Source: Macrostomum hystrix (Eukaryota; Animalia; Platyhelminthes). Taken from it: a stretch of 64,000 nt of DNA. This document shows, one piece after another, positions 6,101 through 26,700 of the stretch. The DNA lies in NCBI GenBank assembly GCA_950097015.1, contig CATNEN010000038.1, positions 11,284,001 to 11,348,000 of the forward strand, given 5' to 3'. The notes beneath the pieces were generated by a model. The model searched no databases, had not been told where the DNA came from, and saw only the letters and a program-made list of their open reading frames with translations. A program made the translations under genes and the position numbers. Within the stretch, counting starts at the first letter, position 1, and the number at the start of each line of letters is the position of its first letter.

Positions 6101-9100
6101 AATGCACCGTACTTACTATCTGTGTTGCTTCAAGCAGGTTCCACGATTTTTTACTTTGTCTCAATCCTTTTAAACTGGGAGTGTTGACAGAGAAGACAAA
6201 GAAAGACCTAAATTCTGAACCGAATACAAGAGCAACAAAAGGCTTCTCTAGAAAAATGCTTTCCATTGATTTTTTAAACAGCGCGTTTGAAAACGTCTTT
6301 GAAAACCTAATTGTAAAGCATTTTGACGGTGTAATAATAAGATTTTCATATAACTATTATTACGCGACGAATGTGAGCTCACTCGTGGCTTAGCCATACT
6401 GAATGTGGCCTCGCTGTGGAATCCATCACATCGGTGCTAGATGCTGATGCGTCAGACCACTCCGCAACCCACCACCTCGGTATACTTTGGACCAAACTAA
6501 GCAGACACATGGTGTGCGCTTGCCTATTGAAAAGAAATAAAAAACAAAAGTATACACAGCTGCTTGAGTTTGTGCCTGCATATGGAGTACGCTTCAGATA
6601 CCCAGAACTTCATATTTTTAAAGTACTTCCCTCACACTAGCTCGTATTAGATTTTCACATTTTTCTAGATTCCCAGTTGAATGATACTATGAAAAAGCCA
6701 TGGATAGAAAATAGATGATTGAAAATCGCTAAATGATGTCGTCTAATTGGTAGATTTATGCTAGGCTTCCGAGTGCGTAAATCACAGATTCTATATTACC
6801 TATAATATAGAATATAGAATAGAATATAGGTAATATAGAATCTGTGGCGTAAATAGTCTTGGCACGAGTGCGCGCAGTAGCATAAGTGCATTGATTTATG
6901 ACCAAGTGTGTGTGCGCAAGACCAGCTCCTTCGGCCCATAGACAATACCCGTCTGGGATTTACTGCATAGTAGCTCAGAAGAGGGATGGCACGGAGATCA
7001 AGTGGGGCAACATAGTCATGTCATTTACCGCACAGTTGTGGAATTTACTGCACACTTCAATCTATTTCTTTGATGGCCTTTGGGCCATAAACTATACACG
7101 AGCTTGAGACGTTTACGCACACTTGGTTATATGTCAATGTTACAATTTTAAGGGTGACGTGTTTTAATTAAAATGATAAACATTTATATTGAGAGGCCAA
7201 CTCGAGGAGCAACTAGAGCGAATATAGTTCACCCCAAAAGGGGGCGTTAATTGCTTGTCATCTACACTTAACACAATACATGAATCCCTCAGCGAAATCG
7301 ACGCTTTCATCTACGACGCTACAGTGCTGCAGTACCGGGTGGGCAAAGACAAGGACTGCAAGCTGAAGACAGTCGGCAACTGGTACTCCATGACTGGCTA
7401 CGGCGTGGGCTTCCCCAAGGGCTCCAAATGGAAAACCGACATCGACCGGCAAATTTTGATTTATCGAAAAAATGGTGCGCAAAGATCTAAAATTTTTTGC
7501 CAATGGAGACTCTTTCTCATAAGAAAAGAAACCAAACATTCTCACGCAGGTCTGCTCGAGCGCTGGAGCAAATACTGGTTCACTGGAGCCTGCCAGCAGA
7601 GCGGCCGCCTTCGCAACTCTAACCAGACTCTGGGCGTCAAGAACTTCATCAGCGCCTTTATCCTGCTGATTGGCGGGATGCTGCTTTGCTGCCTGCTACT
7701 GGTCCTTGAGCACTGGTTCTACCGGTACATGCGGCCTCGGCTCAAGGACTTCGACAAGTACGGATGCTGCGGGCTCGTGTCAATTGTGAGTTCTGCACCG
7801 ATGAGCCTAATCTGCAAATGAAAAACCTAACAATTTCACCTTCGCCACGTCTAGCTTCCAAAATTAATTCTGCGTCTGCTACGTTGACACCTTTCAGAAG
7901 TATTTCAGTCCCTACCATGTCCTAGGAAACCTAATTCAAATCTACAGCCGTGATACCATCAGGCCTGATTCGTAGCTACTGCTGTGTGTTCAAACAAGAT
8001 TTCCAATTTTTTCCCTATCGACACAAAAGAGAATCAACAGCCCGAAGCGGGTCTCACGTGTGCACTAAATTTAATGGAGTTAGATTATCAATAAAAGCTG
8101 GACAGATTATCAGCGGAGGCCGCAAAGGCTAGCCTCGCGGTCTCAAAAAAGCAAGTTTCACTTGACAACTCGGCGGTCAGTTGGAACACCCAGCAAATCG
8201 CTTGGGGATATGAAGAGGCCATATAGAGAGCCCAGCCTCATTAGCATAACCAGTCTAGCGTCCAGTCGCTACTCTATTCTCTCTTCCACTCGCTGCCGCT
8301 CTCCCGATGCGGCACCCGCCTGAGCCATTTTCCAGGAAACGAGGAAGCTTCCTCCCAGAGAGACAGACAGAAAGGCCAGCTGCAGCACTGTTGGAGGTGA
8401 ACAAGGTTGACACCGGGGCGAGGGCGCCAGGAGGCTCATAAATTTTATGCTTGCCCGCTTCTCGGCTGGGATAATTGAAGTAGAGCGAGAGGTTGAGAGG
8501 AAAGGGGATAGGGCGGGATGGGAGCTCCACGGGAGTCACACAGGCATTCCTGTGATACCTCCTGGGAGAGACAGTGTTCCGCAGAGTTCGAGCTCTGCTT
8601 CAGGCCGAGCGAGTGCAAGTATCTTCCTGTTGCTTCACCGAACTGCGCGCGTCATTCTTTTTCTCTGCTTGGTCACTATTTTAGGGACAAACATCCAAGG
8701 AATTTTTGATGGAGAATAATCTACCTGACAAAAATTTCATTTTCATGGACTGTAAGCACGGACGCATCAGTTGATGACAGTCGACCCGCAGCTAGCGACG
8801 AGGCAGTTCTGCCCGTTTCGCTGTCTCCTGAGCACACACACACACAGATACCGTACGCAGGCAAGCACTCACATATTATGAAACATGTGTGTACATCTGT
8901 CCTGACTTTCCCATCGAGGCATTTCGTTGCACTCTCACTGTTTTAACTGAATATGGCCCCACCACGGATTTGAGCTCAATCGGACGCGTTTGAGCCCCTC
9001 CGTCATTCACTCCCCTATATCGACTTAATTCGTGAGACAATGAACCCTTGGTCCTGATAAAATAAAGAATATTTCTTCCTGATGAAAAATCTAAAATTTA

Positions 9101-14784: not shown

Positions 14785-17700
14785 TTAAGCGATACCACTG
14801 AGTTGACTGAAAAGCCTGCACGAGGCAGCGTAAAGCAGGCGGTACTGCTGTATTCTGACGATGGCCCCAGTCTGGCTCACTATGCTCTGCATCAGCTCCG
14901 GTACGGAGATCAACGGACGCTGCGAATGAAAAGTTCAAGCAAATAAGCTTAACTATTTTTTATCTTTGATATCACTTGGAACACTTCTTCTCACTGTAAG
15001 CTAACTAGTCACTCTCAAGCTGTGTCTGATCAGTCCCGTAATTACCGTCTGATCACTATCGTAGTAGCTGTCTAATTACTGTCATGGTTGACTAACTCTC
15101 GTAGTCCCGTAGTATTCTAATGCAATTTCTATATTACTGTCTTTTGGTCGTCAGTTCAATCGACTGCAATCACTCCGCCGCCCTGTTGCATAACAGTCAC
15201 CAGGCCTCGCTAAAACTGTCCAAAGCCGACACTGAAAATAACAGTCTTGGTACTGGCTCACAACAACTATTCACAATGGCCGCAACAAATGAAATCACGC
15301 AGGGCCACTTCAGTCACATCGAGTTAAGCTGGATAAGCTCATTCGCATGCCTATTCTCATTAGTTGGCCGTTCCTTCTGTGTGGCCTAGTTCGGCTACCC
15401 CTGACCCCATCTAGCAGATTCAGGGTCCACAAATTTGACAGCTGATAGCCTTAGGGCGTTGGCAAGCCAAACTGTGGTCAAAAAGTGTGTCACGCAACGC
15501 GTGCCTGGTCTGCAGTTTAATTTATTAACTACCGCAAACTACTTCCAGTGGGCAGTTTAGTTAAAAAGCTTTAATGTATGATGTATGGGATCAGCAATGA
15601 AGTGGGTCAGGCGATGAGCTGGGAAGTGGGTCAGGGGATCAGATTGGAAGTGGGTCAGGCGATGAGCTAGGAAGTGGGTCAGGGATCAGCTACGAAGTGG
15701 GTCAGGGGATCAGATAGGAATTGGGTCAGGGATCAGATTGGAAGTGGGTCAGGGATCAGCTACGAAGTGGGTCAGGGGATCAGATAGGAATTGGGTCAGG
15801 GATCAGATTGGAAGTGGGTCAGGGATCAGCTAGGAAGTGGGTCAAGGGACAAGCTAAGAAATGGGTCTAGGGTGTAGTTAATTAAATAAAAGTAAAGCAG
15901 AAGTACATGGAGAAGGTGCACAAGATGATGCACTTACAGTAGCCGACTCGCCATCCGCGTCTCCGTCGCCATCGCCGTCCACATTCATCTGAGCGCCCGC
16001 CTCCAGTGCGGCCACCAGGTGAGTGAGCGCAAGGCAGACGGCCGCTAAGCCGTCCAGTCGTCGTCGACCACCTCGCCGTTCAGTAGCCGTAGCCGACAGA
16101 GAAACCAGCAGAGGAGGCGAGTGCGTCGTTAAAGTTCGCCCTCCTGCGCCGCCTCCGGGCAGTGCGCTGGAGAGCTGCCATGCGCAGGCTGCGGCGGCGG
16201 CCAGAGCGGCGGCTGCGGCGCGTAGACGGACGCCGTCGACAGACGGCAAAGGCGAGGAGAAGTCCACAGCGCCGTCACCGGCGATAGGAAGGACGACGAA
16301 TAGACGAGCTGGGAGACGGCCGCCCGAACGGCGAATGCGGAGGCAGCGGAGAGCGAAGTCGCGATAGTTGCGGGACTCGATGAGCTGGACGCTTAGTTCG
16401 TCTGGAGTGACGGGAGTGATAGGTTTGATAAGGTATAGTGACATATTTGATAAGGGCAAGTGACTGGGCGAGTGACAGGCCTAATAAATTGATAAGTGAC
16501 AGGCTGGATAAGGGTAAGTGACAGGCTGGATAAGGGTAAGTGACAGGCTGGATAAGGGTAAGTGACAGGCTGGATAAGGGTAAGTGACAGGCTGGATAAG
16601 GGTAAGTGACAGGCTGGATAAGGGTAAGTGACAGGCTGGATAAGGGTAAGTGACAGGCTGGATAAGGGTAAGTGACAGGCTGGATAAGGGTAAGTGACAG
16701 GCTGGATAAGGGTAAGTGACAGGCTGGATAAGGGTAAGTGACAGGCTGGATAAGGGTAAGTGACAGGCTGGATAAGGGTAAGTGACAGGCTGGATAAGGG
16801 TAAGTGACAGGCTGGATAAGGGTAAGTGACAGGCTTGACAAAAAGAGTAGCCGGGGGTGCCTCACCCTTGCCCTCGCCGTAGCTGATCTCGTCGCCCGGC
16901 CGCCGAGGCCACAGACTGTCGGCCTCTCTAATGGACGCCAGCAGCCACAGGACACCGCAGCCGGAGTCCAACACACGGCGCCAGAACTCTCGCCGCTCCG
17001 TCGAGTCATCCGATGGCGCCAGCATCGCCTGGTAGCCGCGCTGAAGTCGACGCGCTCCGCCCAGCGTCACCGTTGTCGGACCAATGTCGCCGTCGCCGAG
17101 AAGGTCGACCTCAGAATCGACTTCGCTCTCGACCTGAGCAAATGAACGAAGATTAAAATAAAAAGGGGCGAAATTGGGGATTCTAGGAAATGATGATAGC
17201 GATAATGTAGTGCCTGTGTTCCTAATGGCCGTTGGTTCATGCCGGTTTGATTGGCTCGGCCTTGGCCTCACCCTCTATCACCCTCCTCTCCCCCTCCCTG
17301 CTCTGTGTGCCCTGTGCCGCCACCTGATTGGCTGGGCGCGGGCGTTGTCTGTCAATCCTTACCCCATCCCTGCGTGGCTTTGCCCTCTGTCCCGCCAATC
17401 AGCTCTGCGTAGCTTTGCCCGTCCACCAGGACAGCGCGTACAACCGTACCCCTCCCTGCGCGCTGATGTCTTGACGGTCTCTTACTGCAAAGACTGAATT
17501 TATTGCATGACAGCAAATACACAGAACTCTTCAGAGAAGCCACCTGCGTCATCCTGCGTTCCGACCGGTAAGCGCTGCATTCGTGTCTCTCCTTTCGGAG
17601 TGTCAGGCCTGTACTGTACGATTTTACGTAGGAGTACTGCGTGAGTGTCCAAACGCTACGGGTAAGATATATACCCTAGTTTACTCAATGGTACTGTAGG

Positions 17701-20700
17701 CCGGGACCCCGAACCGACCACAGTCACTACAATAATCAAAGGGGGAATTTAGCAGAGCCAGGTGAGGTGCCACCACCTGAGCGAACTCGGCCCCCAGTCG
17801 CTGCGCGCTTCCGGCCAGCGCCTCCAGCCGGGCCAGGGTCCGCCTGGCCGTCGAATTCGCCGTCGCCGTCGACGTCAGCGTAGCCGCATAGATGGAACCG
17901 GCGCAAAGGCGGGGTCGGTGCAGCCCGATGGCGTCGACTTCGGCCTGGCCGAGCTCGGACAGCGGAGCCGCGCTCAGCAGAAGCTGGCCAGCCGGCAGGC
18001 GCTGACCATCGGCTGTCGGCGTCGACCTACCCGAGGCAGGCGCCGACGCGCCGTCAATCGTTGTAGCCGAAGGCGCAGCCGCTAGCGCCGACACTTGAAG
18101 GGGAGCTTCGCCTTCGTCAACGATGACGCCCGCCTCGGCCAGCTCCTCCGGGGCGAAGATGCCGCTCGACTCCATGATGGTCGTGTCCGCGTCGTCCTGA
18201 ATTGGGGGATCATTTTGCTTCAAATAGAGTCTGACTTTGTTTCGGGTCGGGACCCAGAATGACTCTTTTTAGGGATGAGGATTAATTCAGTATAGATAGG
18301 GAATTTTCGGGGACTTTTTAGTAGGAATGGGATTTTTCAGTGGGATGGGGACTATTTGAGATGGGATTTTTTTTAGTAGGGATGGGAATTTTTAGTAGGG
18401 ATGGGAATTTTCAGTAAGAATGGGATTTTTCAGTGGGGATGGGGACTATTTGGGATGGGAATTTTAAGTAGGGATAGGATATTTTAGGATGGGTTTTTTT
18501 AGGACTGGGATTTTTAGTAGTGATAGGTACTATTTAATAAGTTTTGGGAATTTTTCGAAGGAATGACCAGTTTTAAACGAAGCTAGATATCGAAATAAAG
18601 CAGGAATACGGATTTAATGAGTCGGGATAATAAACTTTTTAGTAGTAGGGATGAGAATCAGCTTCGCCTGATCTCCGCTCACCCTGGAGGTCAGGGATTC
18701 GACCTCCGTCTCCTCGGAGATTCGAGTTCCACCGCCCGAACCTGGCAAACCGAGCGAACCGCGGGTCAAGGTCAGGTCAATCTCGTCGAGATGGCCGCAC
18801 AGGCTGAGCAGCTCATTAACCTGTTGGCAACGGGTGCGCAGCAATATGATAGGTGATTCGATTTGACTCGAGAACCGAAGCAGGAGGCAAATGGGAATCA
18901 AAGCTAGAAATGTAGCAGGAATCGAAGCTAGAGATTCAGCAGGAATCGAAGCTAGAAATGTAGCAGGAATCGAAGCTAGAGATTCAGCAGGAATCGAAGC
19001 TAGAAATGTAGCAGGAATCGAAGCTAGAGATTCAGCAGGAATCGAAGCTAGAGATTCAGCAGGAATCGAAGCTAGAGATTTAGCAGGAATCGAAGCTTGA
19101 GATTTATTAGGAATCGAAGCAAGGGTCAAATCGGAGCATTGTGGAGAGCGGCCAACTTCACCTGATGAGTGTTTGCACCAGTGCTCAAATCGTAGGGTCC
19201 AATACGCAGCAGGCGGTCTCCAATTCTGACTGAGGCGAGCGACTCCCCGGCAGCCGAAGGCAGGACGGCCAGCACGCAGACGCCGCCGCTTGGCAGATCG
19301 CCGAGCTGCAGCGGTAATGGCCGCGAGCCGTCGGCCTCTCGCGGCAACGGCAGTGACACTGAGTAGGCTGCTACAGACTGCGGCAGGTAGGGAGCCCTGA
19401 GGGGAGCGGATAGCGGTCGCTTGTGGTTCCTGATTTATAGCCTTCGGGGTGAAGTCTTGGAGTCTTGGAGGCACATAATTTGGTGACACCGCGAGGAGGC
19501 ATGATCTGCAGCCAGCGAGGAGGCAATTCCGCTGACTCCTGAGCACACACGCACACAGATACTGTACGCAGGCATACGCTCACACAGGTGTGAATTGCAC
19601 GACAAGCCCCCAAGCCTTCTCTCCGAGGCTGCGCCCCAAATGAATGTGGCCTCGCCGCGGAATCGAGCTGAGGGACCTTGGTGCGGGAGGCAAACGCGTT
19701 AATCGCTCTGCTACCGACCCCTCGACCACAGGCCTCTTAGCAATTATAATTACGAGCTCTAAAATGCCAGGGATCGAACTCACCAAGGTAGGCAATAATG
19801 AGCTCACCTGCCAGTGATACCGACAGCCACGCCTTGGTCGCTATCGTCGCTGAACGAGTCTCCCGCCTCCGCAGCTGCCTCGTCCTCCTCGGCCAGCTCT
19901 TCGTCGTCCGTCGGCGCCGGTTCGAACTCGCGCAGCACCCGGATGCGCACACGACGCGGCGCGGCCCTCAGCGCCTCGACGCAGTCGTCGTGTCGCATCC
20001 GGGACACGTCGATGTCGTTCACAGCCAGGAGGCGATCGCCCGGACGCAGCACGCCGTCTGACAGGGCCGGGTCGCGTACGATACTGCGAATGTAGCAGCC
20101 TCCAGTGGTGTCCTGCCCGCCGGACACCAGGAAGCCGAGGCCACCACCGCCAACTTCGTCCTGCGGAGTCGGGCGACAGAGTAAACATGCTTGGGGTGGC
20201 TGTGTGTGGCTTGGGGTGGCTGTGCGTGGCTTGGGGTGGCTGTATGTGTGGCTTGGGGTGGCTGTGTGTGGCTTGGGATGGGTGTGTGTGAGGCTTGGGG
20301 TGGCTGTGTGTGTGGCTTGGGATGGGTGTGTGTGAGGCTTGGGGTGGCTGTGTGTGTGGCTTAGCGTGGTTGTGTGTGTGGCTTGGGATGGGTGTGTGTG
20401 AGGCTTGGGGTGGCTGTGTGTGTGGCTTAGCGTGGTTGTGTGTGAGGCTTGGGGTGGCTGTGTGTGTGGCTTGGGGTGGCTGTGTGTGTGGCTTGGGGTG
20501 GGTGTTAGGCTTGGGGCGGGTGTGAGGCTTGAGGTGGGTGTAAGGCTAGGTGTAAGGCTAGCAAGGCCGATGGTCAGCAATTCAATCAAACCTTGTACAG
20601 CACAGTTTCAACAAGACCCGGCGCCTCCTTGGCGTCGATCTCGGCCAGCCGACGAGCCATCCGGTCAATCAGCGAATCCTCGTCAATGGATGAGGACAGT

Positions 20701-23700
20701 CGCAGCGAGTCCCTGTTCGCTGCGGCTTCATCAGTCGGCTCCGGGCTAAGAAGCAGCGGCACTCGCGGCCGCGCAATGTACAGTCGAATCGGGCTGGCAG
20801 CGGCCCGCAGCATGGCCACGATTTCAGCGTGGCTTCTGCCATAGACGGGCTGGTCAGCGATCTCCAATAGCAGATCGCCGTCGCTCAGCAGGCGCTGCAC
20901 TGACTCATGGCTGTGCTCCAATACCCGTTTGATGCGTCCGAAGTGGCGCAGCGCCGACGTGCCGCCGAGGACGCCATCGTCAGAGGAGACGCTACCGCCA
21001 GTCACGGCTGAGTTGCCCGGATGATAGCCGCCAGAAACCTACGATGAACGACGAACATGTTTAACAGAACATAGTCAACACGCCGTACTTAGGATGCTAA
21101 ATTTAGAAACATGACCGAGATGAATATTGACGTCAGCAGCTATTTTTAGAAACATATAATACTTGTGTGTCCCAAAGTACGTGAGTAAGGTTTCTATTTT
21201 TAGAAACAGACACAACGCACCTGAATTCCAACGCTTCCCGACTCATTCTTGTACACGGAGACCGGCAGGCAGTCGCAATAGCTGCTCAACTGGGGAAAAG
21301 CCTCTTTTAGTCGCTTCCTGCCAGCCAGTACGGAGGCTGAGTCCAGCAGGCTCGAATCCGGCGAGCCAACACCGATACCGCCAACGCCGCCGCCACTGCT
21401 GATGCCAAAACTGTCGCCGCCATCTTCTGTGGTTGTCGGACTGTCAGGCGGCGGCGGCGGCCCTGGCGGCTGAGTCGGCTGGCCGCGTTCGAGGTGAAAC
21501 ACCGAGATCTCCGGAGCCGAAAGCAGCGTCTCCATGGCAACCTTGTGAGTAACGCGTTCCAGGCTGACGCTGTTCACCCAAATGATCTTGTCATTGACTC
21601 GGATGCGCGCGTCCAAGTCTGCGGCGCCACCTTTCGCGATCGACTTCACGTAGATGGCGCCGCCCTCCAGGCTCGTGTTCGTGCCTCCCTGGAGGCGGTG
21701 GATGAAATGTACTTTTAGAGTACATTCTGTTCTCAGCGACAACATTTTATTGAGGTGAAGACAATAGACAAAAATACACACATACACAGATACATTCCGT
21801 ACATGTGATTGCGCTTAACAGTACAGACTTAAGCATTTCTTCCTGAAGTAGCGCTTCCACATGCGATCAAACGATCGAATTTCAAAATGGCATGAGCACA
21901 TGAGCACTCACCCAGACATAGAAGCCGAAGCTGTCATCCTTCTTTCTTAGAGTAACCTTGAACTTATCGCCCGGGAGAAGGTCGCGCACTCCGCCGGCGC
22001 CGCTGCTGACGCGGCTCAGCTGGGAGGTTTTGCGGTCCAGCTCTAGCTGATGTCGGGTCTTCACGATGATCGTGTCCTGGGTGGACGCTGTACCCTCAGA
22101 GGAGCCTAAAGAGATGAACAGGGAACTCTGAATACACGGAGGCTGATAAATTTATCAAATTTAGCTTGGACAAATTGCGTCATTCGCCGAGTGCGACTCA
22201 CCGCCGTCGTCATCGCCGCCAAAGCCCCCAGAGGCCGGTGTGACGCTGAACGTTGGCAGCGTCGGATTCGATGCCCATCGGCGCCCGCCGCCGCTGGCAG
22301 CCGGTGTTGTTAACTTCGTCGGCGTCACGGACGTTGTCATCTGCGGCGGCGGTGGCCTCAGCGGCGGAGCCGGCCGCACCAAGCCGTACGCCGAAGAAAC
22401 CTCGGCGGCTTTCTGGTTCTCCATCTCGTCAGTGTCCGACGCAGAGCCTTGGTGGTCGACGGGTGTCCGTGAGTAGATATCGCCGAGGCTGCCAGATGCT
22501 CCAGCGCCACGATCGTGTCGTCGAGAGCGTCGTCGACGCTGTCGGGTCGGCGGCCTGTCTTGGCGGCGACGACGCGCCGACGAAGCAGCATCGTCGTCTT
22601 CAGCTTCAGCCTCGGCGCCGACGCCACCGGAGCTGTAGGACGCCGAGCCCGATGAGATGGTAGCGTCAGCGCCGCCATTGCTGACGTAGCCGGCAATCTG
22701 CAAGTGGTTTAAGCCGGAGCTGTCGGTGGCGGCCGACACAAAGTTTATATCGTCGTCAATGTCGTCTCCGCGCACAAATGCTTCATCGAAGCCGTCGCGG
22801 CCGAGGCGGCTCAGCATTGAGCGAACCCGTACTGTGGTGGCGCCTGGCTGCAAAAGGTTCTGGCGCGACGGCGGCTGCACTGCCGCTGACGACCTGTCAG
22901 CGATTGGTGAGTGAGATTGGTGTGCAGCTTCGTATTTGAGCCGAGCGGTCTGGAGTTCGAATCTGCCCAAGGGAAACAGTTTTTAACAGTCCTAATTTGT
23001 GCCAGACACTTAATTAATTCCCTAGTGCTTCAGTTTATCAAGCCGTTAAATGGATATCAGGAGTAGTGTTGTGTATGCGGTCTACATTGGCTTGCATGCG
23101 GTCGCCTTAAGTGCAAGCGTTCGCGGCGCGCGTTCTGATTGGCTGGCGGGTTTTACTGTCTGCCCCAAACTGGTCTAGGCCGGGTTGGGGGTTTAGTTGT
23201 TGAAGTGACTGTCTAAATATTTGCTTTTTTAAGTCTTGCAAGCCTTTGTCAACCTTCTAAATCATTACTGCTTCGATTTTTCTTTGGCTACGCTGCCTCA
23301 GCCTTCACAGTCCACGGTACTTACTCAGCTCTAGCTGGACCGGAAGCAACCAGCCGCTGCTGCTGCTGCTGCTGCCACTGGCCCTTGCCGCTGCCGGTGG
23401 CCAAAGTCTGCGAAGCCCATCGCTGCACCCCGACGTCGGCCGATGCGACAGAAGGCGAGGCGCCCAGCTCCGGCCAGGAGGCGCGCAGCCGACCGGACCA
23501 GTCGTGCAGCTGGCTGCACAGGGCCGCGAGATACTTGCCGAGCTTGGCGCTGCCCAGCTGAAACTGCAGCCGGCCCAGTTCTCGGCCGTTCACTCGCAGC
23601 GAAGTTGTCGAAGCTACAACAAGTTTGGCGCGCTTGAAGGACACCTTCTCGGCGTCCTGCCAGGCTAGGCGATGCAACGGCGGACAGGCCGGATGCCGTC

Positions 23701-26700
23701 GGCGGCTGCCAGTCTCGCCGAGGGCCCTTGCAACCAAAAGTCCGCGCTGCGACACGCCTAGCAACAATGGGCCGGCGCCGCTTCCAGCCGCCGCCGCTGC
23801 TGCTGACGTTGACGAAGCATCAGCAGGGGCCAGGGCGAACAGGTGGAAGCTGTAGTGAGGCAGCGACATGGCGACAGAGCAGAACTGCCGACCGCTGATC
23901 GCACGCGAACCGCGAGCCGTCAGCTGCGAGGAAATGCGGCGCCACTCGGCGACAAGCTTCGCTGAAAGGTCGCTTACTTCGCCGCTGCCAGAAGCCACCG
24001 ACTGCTGCTGTTCCAACATGCACTTTGGTAGGTACTGCTCGATTCTACAATTAGATCCCAATTTTCACTAACTAACACATGAATGTAATCAGGTGTCATA
24101 AAACATAATATCTGATCCCTTAGCAATAACCGATCCAGTGTCCTACGTGCGTAAATCCCAATCTCTGATCCCTTAGCAATAACCGATCCTGTGTCCTACG
24201 TGCGTAAATCCCAATCCCTGATCCCTTAGCGATAACCGATCCTGTGTCCTACGCGCGTAAATCCCAATCTCTGATCCCTTAGCAATAACCGATCCTGTGT
24301 CCTACGTGCGTAAATCCCAATCCCTGATCCCTTAGCAATAACCGATCCTGTGTCCTACGTGCGTAAATCCCAATCTCTGATCCCTTAGCAATAACCGATC
24401 CTGTGTCCTATGCGCGTAAATCCCAATCTCTGATCCCTCGATTCTCGATCCTCGATTCATCCAGTATTCTAAATCTTGGGGAGTGGGTGGCAAAATGGTC
24501 AAACGCGTCGGCCTCTCGCACCTCTCAAACGGTTTTTTTGTTCCCTAGATGATTACGACTCTTAAGATTTCGAACCTCTGAACCACAAATTCAACACTAG
24601 CTACCTAAAAGCAGCCGCAGCCGCAGGGTCGGAATCGTCAGCGGCTGGAGGCGCCGAGCCCAGCTCGTGGTGCAGCGCCAATCCGGCCAGCTGCATGACG
24701 GCCCCCTCGCCAGCTGGCAGCGTCGAGTCTAGCACAGCTCTCCGTAGCAGAAGATAGAGCAGGCGGCGGGAGCCAGACCTGCTTCGGAGGGGGGGCGGGT
24801 CACATTGTCACTCTGTCACATTGTCACTCTGACACATTGTCACTCTGACACATTGTCACTCTGACACATTGTCACTCTGTCGTCCTACTCACGGCACTGA
24901 GTCCACACTCTCCGGATAGAATTTTAGGCGCAGCGTCAGCTGTAGCAAGATGCCACCTCGGCCTGCGCCGCCTCCGCCGCCGTCGGCTCCGCCGCTGCCG
25001 CCGGATCGGCCCAAGGAGGCGGATCGAGACGACTTTCCAAGCCAGTCTTTCGGCGCCTGCTTGGCCATGCGAATGTCGTCCAGAAGGAACCTGGCTTCTC
25101 CGTCTGGGAAGGCACAAAAATAAATTGCAAATGATTAATATCCAATTTTGGTAATTTTAATAATGAAACGAATGACATTTTTCTATACATATCGGCCAGA
25201 AAGCAACCTTACCAACAACCATTGCCAGCCCTAGCAGGTGATCGATTCCAGAATTGACGTAGGCGCACACAGAGCGGACCAGCTCGCCTCCGAGTGTGTT
25301 GGCTGAGCAGGTCAGGGCTAGTCTCTCCCCGGTGGGCAGGTGAACTCGGACCTCCTTGTCCAGCTTGCCCTGATCTCGCTGCGGATGGAGCAATAAAATT
25401 AATAAGTAGTGTGAATAGCGCGTTTCGTTATTTTTTGTCTTCAATCAAAAAGCCAAAAAATATAAACTTACGGACAACCGCAGCGGGGATTTTGACGAGC
25501 CGGCTGTCGCAGTGGCGGATGACGTCAGCAATGTCACAGGTGTGGGTGCGTTTCCCTGATGCGCTGTGAATTTAGCGCTACTGAATTCGTCATCAAAGCC
25601 CGCAATCGCATCTGCTTCCGTCTGTAATTCGCTGGTGTGGGCCAAATCCAAATGACCGTCACCAACGTCGTACATTATCTCGATGTTGTTCGTCTCGGTG
25701 CCGACAGCCACAGATGATGAAAGCTGCTGCGGCTGCGGCATCGCTTGTTGAGTCTGCGGCAATGTTGGCAGCCGACGCCTCATGCTCGGCGACGCTTTCG
25801 GCGACTGCGACATCGGCAGTGGTGGCAGCAACGATGGAAGCTGAAGTGGCGACGATTGTAGTAGCTCGCTATTTGGAATCGGCACAGGCAAATCAACGGT
25901 CTCAGTGATGGCATCCAGTGTTGCCGGCCTCGATGGCTGCTCTTGGACCGAAGGCTCAGTCGCCTCGTCGACTGTGGCAGTTCTGAGGTGGTTTTCATTG
26001 ATTTTGTTTCGGAAAAATAAATGTTAACGAAAAACGCTATTTCAGCTACTGCCACTTCTAAGTAGAATAAATTGATAAATTACTTGGTCGTGACAACATG
26101 AGCTTCTACCGATGGGTGTTGGTCTGGAATAGTGGACAGGCTAGGCACTGGGACGCGATCCAGACGAACTTCTTCAGTCGTGTCGAGAGCGATCGCGCAC
26201 TGAACTCCGCTTTCAGCGAGCTTAGATTCAATTTGCTGAGTCTGGGACTGTTTTTCGACTTTGACAAGTTGTCGATTAGTTTGAGCCCCTTGAGAGCCAT
26301 GTTTTGCTGTCGTATTCACGCCATAATCGATCGAAATTCGATAGCTGAACGTTAAATGCAAAGAAAAAAATCTAGCCAATTAAAGCCATACTTTTAGAGC
26401 TTGGAATTTAAATTAATTGCCCTAATCGCTTACCAGTAGCCGCCAATACCATTTAGGGCTCCGTCTGCCAGAGCGCAAGCGTAATCATACATAGTCATTA
26501 GCTGCCGATCCGAATTATTTATTCGACTAGACTTGTCGGGTAAGTAAAGCTTGTGATCGATTGCGGACACTAAGAAGTCAGAATAGCTTGGTATGGGACT
26601 GAAAAAATACAAAAAAGTGAAGTTTAAGTACGGACCAAAAGGAAAAGTAATAAACCTACAGATGTCAAACATATACTTTTCTATACATATCGGCATCACT

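Follow-up and report, generated by a model that had tools for sequence, protein, structure and literature searches.

Non-LTR elements such as SLACS/CZAR and NeSL-1 insert into spliced-leader (SL) RNA genes. In the Gypsy/Ty3 element Cer1 of C. elegans, the RNA of an LTR retrotransposon is itself a substrate for SL trans-splicing: SL1 is found only on the spliced 2.4-kb mRNA and no DNA copy of the leader has been described in the LTR (PMC3315495). Similarly, ~30% of the Iso-Seq reads from transposable elements in Hydra carry an SL (PMC12220107). DNA copies of the mature SL exon that arose via reverse-transcribed trans-spliced RNA are known from dinoflagellates, in which retroposed host genes carry these relict SLs at their 5' ends (PMC5585692, PMC3229502). 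In Echinococcus, solo LTRs of ta-TRIM elements near or in genes contain a promoter and a splice donor and start transcripts that are spliced to host acceptors, with no SL reported (PMC4558846). Finally, parasitic flatworms have partial leaders in some of their LTR and LINE elements, and reverse transcription of trans-spliced element RNA has been proposed to explain them (PMC12582326, Mol Biol Evol 2025). This brief mention is the only one that we found in the literature on SLs inside LTRs, and a paper on the LTR elements of Macrostomum lignano does not mention SLs in LTRs (PMC12801592).

Here, we analyse a locus in a 64-kb stretch of Macrostomum hystrix DNA (referred to as the window). With a probability of roughly 85%, we suggest that this locus is a solo LTR of an old Ty3/Gypsy element in a host intron, that its copy of the leader exon was inherited in the LTRs of the element lineage, most likely from reverse-transcribed trans-spliced element RNA, and that the copy in the window has decayed. 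The coordinates of the features are given in Table 1.

Table 1. Features of the solo LTR and of the surrounding host gene (positions in the window)
Feature	Position	Strand	Evidence or remarks
Host exon downstream of the intron	16866..17133	-	covered by RNA-like contigs
Host intron, 643 nt, GT..AG	17134..17776	-	encloses the whole LTR; joint 17131>17775, 8 ambiguous letters, in X2, X3 and X6
Target-site duplication, 5' copy (ATAA)	17202..17205	.	same 4 nt beside both LTR ends
Solo LTR, 526 bp, old Ty3/Gypsy family	17206..17731	+	termini TGTAGTGCCTGTG...CACAGTCACTACA; sharp boundaries
U3-like promoter block (predicted)	17250..17402	+	ATTGG at 17250 and 17327; CCAAT at 17395
Copy-specific deletion junction	17472..17473	+	~115 bp gone, microhomology GAC; alignment with 16 other copies
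Spliced-leader relic	17473..17509	+	last 37 of 45 nt; 35/37 compared with the true SL
LTR sequence after the SL (originally predicted as a mini-exon)	17510..17567	+	no conserved reading frame
Conserved donor-like CCG/GTAAGC, then small hairpin-like CTCC-TTTC-GGAG	17547..17610	+	sequence conservation
Target-site duplication, 3' copy (ATAA)	17732..17735	.	identical to the 5' copy
Host exon upstream of the intron	17777..18195	-	contigs
Next host intron	18196-18681	-	skipped by contigs of X2, X3 and X6 with CT..AC ends

True SL RNA genes were identified by a pattern search of the M. hystrix assembly (220,453,370 bases in 42 contigs). In these genes the leader exon is followed directly by an intron (...GCCGTAAAGACGGTCTCTTACTGCGAAGACTCAATTTATTGCATG/GTAAGA...), a U-rich Sm-like site and stem-forming sequence, and the main genes are arranged in tandem units of ~11.6 kb on the small contigs C15, C17 and C42. 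Besides these main genes, a tandem array of more than 70 units with a period of ~927 bp (G000:C39:12667889-12744776) carries a different, second variant of the leader (...GAAGACTCTCTTTTTTGCATG/GT). Comparison with the true genes confirmed the originally predicted match of 35 out of 37 positions for the 37-mer in the window, the two differences being located at 17489 (G>A) and 17496 (C>G). This 37-mer occurs once in the window, on the plus strand, and the number of matches expected by chance is 0. Directly 3' of its ATG the sequence reads ACAG and not GT, and the similarity to the true gene is confined to the exon. These two observations bear out the original prediction that the leader is encoded in the DNA without being part of an SL RNA gene, and on the same grounds we rejected an SL RNA gene as the identity of the locus. 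In undeleted copies of the same repeat family the block reads (G)CCGTAAAGACGG...TTATTGCATG/A, which corresponds to all 45 nt of the exon in the true gene. Throughout this element lineage, each LTR has such a leader copy, located between the CCAAT-rich promoter block and the donor-like block. The deletion of ~115 bp in the window copy removed a TATA-like TTTAAGA together with the first 8 nt of the block, and other copies of the family have different deletions within the same stretch.

The exact 31-nt 3' part of the leader was found by pattern search in only six places of the genome outside the SL genes. At L050 (G000:C25:3939500-3943500, positions 2089-2119), a 5'-truncated leader with its last ~31 nt exact is fused to unique sequence, and this locus has the appearance of a retrocopy that derives from trans-spliced RNA and was truncated at its 5' end. 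At L052 (G000:C7:9273000-9277000, minus strand, positions 2039-2083), a near-complete leader with one change in 45 nt and the last 31 nt exact lies outside an SL-gene context and is followed directly 3' by a LINE-like ORF with AP-endonuclease motifs. This locus is either a retrotransposed trans-spliced LINE RNA or a leader-targeting LINE that inserted in a leader relic.

The SL block in the window is part of a dispersed repeat. A search of the genome with 17200-17780 yielded 76 matching pieces in at least 40 places with 72-89% identity. The homology to the other copies extends 267 bp upstream and 222 bp downstream of the SL block and stops at the LTR termini, which are of the TG..CA type with a short inverted repeat (TGTAGTG...CACTACA at 17206 and 17731). 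Most copies of the family are ~640 bp and stand alone, and perfect 4-bp target duplications are present at 6 of the 10 copies in which both ends are recognisable. Of the original suggestion that the leader sits in a mobile cassette or in a Pol II unit, the mobile unit is supported by the dispersal and the target duplications, while a working Pol II cassette is unsupported because the window copy has lost ~115 bp and has no copy-specific RNA contig.

Evidence for the nature of the repeat comes from a search with the 3' terminus, which revealed direct pairs that are 7.2-8.4 kb apart and have gag-pol between them. In the sister family represented by L044, two 690-bp LTRs with 99.3% identity are flanked by the target duplication GAAT; a primer binding site (TGGCGCCCGAACGGGGAC) begins two bases past the 5' LTR, a polypurine tract (AGGAGGGGAGGA) precedes the 3' LTR, and the interior encodes a gag ORF with a zinc knuckle (zf-CCHC) and a 1471-aa pol with PR-RT-RNaseH-IN in the Ty3/Gypsy order. 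The LTRs of this family carry the same SL block, and it is via this family that direct repeats around gag-pol are documented, as no full-length member of the subfamily in the window was found in the genome. The LTR in the window and the L044 LTR align in four blocks, i.e. U3 (87% identity), SL (89%), the donor-like block (77%) and the terminus (80%). Because L044 is a full element and because of this block alignment, the unit in the window is, on sequence grounds, the solo LTR of an older sister family of L044. The L044 family is young, with ~20 LTR copies that are 97-100% alike, and its pol is 73% identical to a pol of M. lignano (P0001). At the gag/pol overlap a 30-bp tandem repeat is present in 12 copies in L044 (2552-3074) and in 20 copies in L045 (2618-3487), and it is this difference in copy number that makes the distances between LTR starts differ (7160 versus 7401 bp). 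An apparent LTR pair, L018/L019, turned out to be a 4155-bp tandem duplication that holds one LTR copy of this family (L043, G000:C1:19306000-19315000).

An SL exon with the same limits was also found in a BEL/Pao family, in which it lies 48 nt from the end of an LTR of ~385 bp. This family encodes Pao Peptidase_A17, DUF1759 and DUF5641, and its pol is barely alignable to that of L044. In L053 (G000:C39:14876800-14885600) the LTRs are located at 800-1182 and 7642-8024, and L047, L049 and L054 are further members; in young full-length members the LTRs are 100% identical. The presence of the SL block in both Gypsy and BEL/Pao elements indicates that the leader was acquired more than once, separately in two LTR superfamilies. 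Young BEL/Pao copies have a leader with seven changes and the older subfamily of L047 and L049 has the exact 45-mer, the flanks being little different, which indicates that the leader region evolves differently from its flanks.

Within the LTR in the window, one of the three CCAAT boxes noted in the original prediction is a forward CCAAT (17395-17399, plus strand) and the other two are inverted ATTGG motifs (17250-17254 and 17327-17331). The previously noted 45-aa ORF spans 17507-17644, and GT sites are indeed present at 17568, 17641 and 17662. The proposed mini-exon is nevertheless LTR sequence without a conserved frame: in related copies the frame is broken by stops and frame-shifting indels, and a coding mini-exon was rejected for this reason. 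A poly(A)-signal-like CAAATAAAC of the relatives is mutated to CAAATACAC in this part of the window copy. The donor-like block is also present in the L044 LTR.

How did a leader exon come to lie inside an LTR? The part shared with the true genes is exactly the mature exon, as the original prediction of a processed SL implied, and includes neither the AT-rich SL promoter nor the GTAAGA intron, which argues that the block came from processed SL RNA and not from capture of DNA. We suggest as the most likely route the reverse transcription of a trans-spliced element RNA with the following steps: (i) trans-splicing would have joined the SL to an ancestral element RNA at a site 5' of the primer binding site, (ii) the leader would have been copied into minus-strand strong-stop DNA, (iii) an aberrant first strand transfer would have set the leader between U3 and the remainder of the LTR, and thereby in both LTRs of the daughter copy, and (iv) the leader would afterwards have been passed on as ordinary LTR sequence and drifted. 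An old element of this lineage would then have landed, plus-oriented, in a short intron of a FERM/PDZ gene on the minus strand, and its interior would later have been lost by LTR-LTR recombination, leaving the solo LTR. This copy has lost the further ~115 bp including the 5' end of the leader, and what remains is removed together with the host intron. Trans-spliced element RNA was not seen in the data used here, and no SL-less sister LTR that would show a clean gain of 45 nt was found.

The host gene and its transcripts were analysed by aligning DNA and RNA-like contigs over 16840-18850; the analysis used contigs, which do not resolve transcript starts, strand or rare RNAs. Contigs of the runs X2, X3 and X6 skip introns with CT..AC ends, and these runs are evidently RNA-derived and the gene is on the minus strand. 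Contigs from these three runs, which come from two studies, skip the 643 nt that contain the LTR, and the original prediction that the leader lies antisense inside a host intron is therefore correct. Before the LTR insertion this intron would have been ~113 nt. Further upstream (19804-24058) the gene encodes FERM_C and PDZ domains. The same 8-mer is found at both ends of the intron (17132-17139 and 17775-17782; ACCTGAGC on the plus strand and GCTCAGGT on the minus strand), and the splice joint is for this reason ambiguous by 8 letters. This repeat exceeds the usual CAG/GT and could reflect either chance or a trace of the birth of the original short intron. A tandem repeat at 16493-16835 lies within the ORF of the minus-strand host gene and repeats ...PVTYPYPACHLPLSSLSLTLIQ... 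in one frame; the RNA contigs were aligned from 16866 upward. DNA contigs of run X1, which is possibly the sample that was assembled, bridge both LTR/host junctions without differences, which indicates that the locus is not an assembly artefact, a possibility raised in the original prediction.

Among the RNA contigs, which show presence and not absence, we found no sequence belonging to this LTR copy alone and no joint from 17567. One RNA contig (run X6, record 19, aligning at 17548-17607) comes from another, L006-like LTR copy and carries a template-switch-oligo-like tag at its 5' end. It starts at the equivalent of 17548, which is 39 nt past the SL block and leaves 20 nt to the donor-like site; this start is possibly the transcription start of the LTR.

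Alternatively, the SL block may be functional throughout the family. According to this model, the block would be the start of R and a hard-wired leader that is used for strand transfer or for handling in the manner of host mRNAs and, in combination with the donor, solo LTRs could provide nearby genes with SL-like first exons. Several observations are in favor of this model: in related LTRs a TATA-like motif (TTTAAGA/TTTAAAAG) is located 14-20 nt upstream of the block and AATAAA/ATTAAA downstream, an arrangement that would fit with the block lying at the start of R or close to it; sequence conservation is seen in the donor-like block; the SL block is retained in young families with LTR pairs that are 99-100% identical; and solo LTRs in Echinococcus provide a start site and a donor that is spliced to former trans-splice acceptors (PMC4558846). 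The conservation data argue in the opposite direction. Based on the mean pairwise column identity over 24 aligned copies of the family in the window, the U3 block with the CCAAT motifs is the best-conserved part (0.90-0.92 over 17324-17461) followed by the donor-like/hairpin block (0.86), whereas the SL block (0.79) is below both, and a special conservation of the SL block in this family was rejected. Moreover, subfamilies share derived leader changes, e.g. ...GAAGTCTCAAGTTATTGCATA, so that copies with diverged leaders have transposed, and many leaders end in ATA instead of ATG. The lower identity of the SL block together with the shared derived changes speaks against selection on the leader in this family. 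The start of the tagged RNA contig downstream of the block fits with a block at the end of U3 and not in R, and in the window copy the TATA-like part is gone and neither a transcript nor a joint from 17567 was found among the contigs. We therefore consider family-wide function of the block unlikely. For the young Gypsy and BEL/Pao members specifically, we see about one chance in ten that the encoded leader acts as the functional start of R. Element RNAs would then start with a host-like leader without trans-splicing, the leader would aid strand transfer and might also promote translation or help to evade silencing, and solo LTRs could feed SL-like first exons to genes via the conserved donor. 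We favor the model in which the leader is an inherited relic; the copy in the window is probably an inert, ordinary remnant with no evident function.

The original prediction also offered retro-integration of the 5' end of an mRNA that had been trans-spliced, i.e. a relict SL as in dinoflagellates. That the limits of the block are those of the mature exon would agree with such an origin, and similar cases seem to be present elsewhere in the genome (L050 and L052, see above). This explanation is contradicted by the boundaries of the family, as the repeat continues for 267 bp upstream of the SL, has LTR termini and a 4-bp target duplication and matches LTRs that flank gag-pol. The SL is thus not at the extreme 5' end and a poly(A) tail is absent, and we regard a processed retrocopy as highly improbable. 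Equally improbable is a non-autonomous DNA transposon (MITE), which was our initial reading given the 13-bp imperfect terminal inverted repeat (TGTAGTGCCTGTG / CACAGTCACTACA), the 4-bp duplication and the solitary copies of ~640 bp. It was dropped when the same termini and internal blocks were found to form direct repeats that enclose gag-pol together with a primer binding site and a polypurine tract; also, no transposase partner was seen. Least probable of all is an SL RNA pseudogene that arose by capture of DNA. This would account for an SL sequence in a mutated context but not for the lack of homology to the region upstream of the SL genes, to their GTAAGA intron and to the Sm-like site.

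In SLACS/CZAR and NeSL-1, as in the solo LTR, a retroelement is associated with SL sequence; in our case, the element itself contains the SL exon and lies at a locus other than an SL gene. If the leader entered as we suggest, the blocks are molecular fossils, which record that trans-splicing affected retrotransposon RNAs from at least two LTR superfamilies and that these RNAs nevertheless completed reverse transcription. They also matter in practice: the SL-like sequence that hundreds of LTR copies encode can be misidentified as SL RNA genes, and in Macrostomum transcriptomics leaders encoded by LTRs can be mistaken for evidence of trans-splicing when SL reads are counted or trimmed. Like Cer1, the element is an LTR retrotransposon, and it differs in having the leader as DNA in its LTR. 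As in ta-TRIM, a flatworm solo LTR with promoter-like and donor-like sequences lies in a gene, whereas for the LTR in the window no transcript or joint was found among the contigs. The relict SLs of dinoflagellates are likewise DNA copies of the mature exon; here, the copy is internal to an LTR and was inherited with the element. For parasitic flatworms, LTR and LINE elements with partial leaders are already known, and the copy in the window is a further, decayed case of an SL relic in a retrotransposon. In the parasitic flatworms such leaders were given only as discarded loci (597) without anatomy; here, the block is placed in a defined LTR of a free-living macrostomid and in both Gypsy and BEL/Pao elements, with the window copy being a deleted solo LTR.
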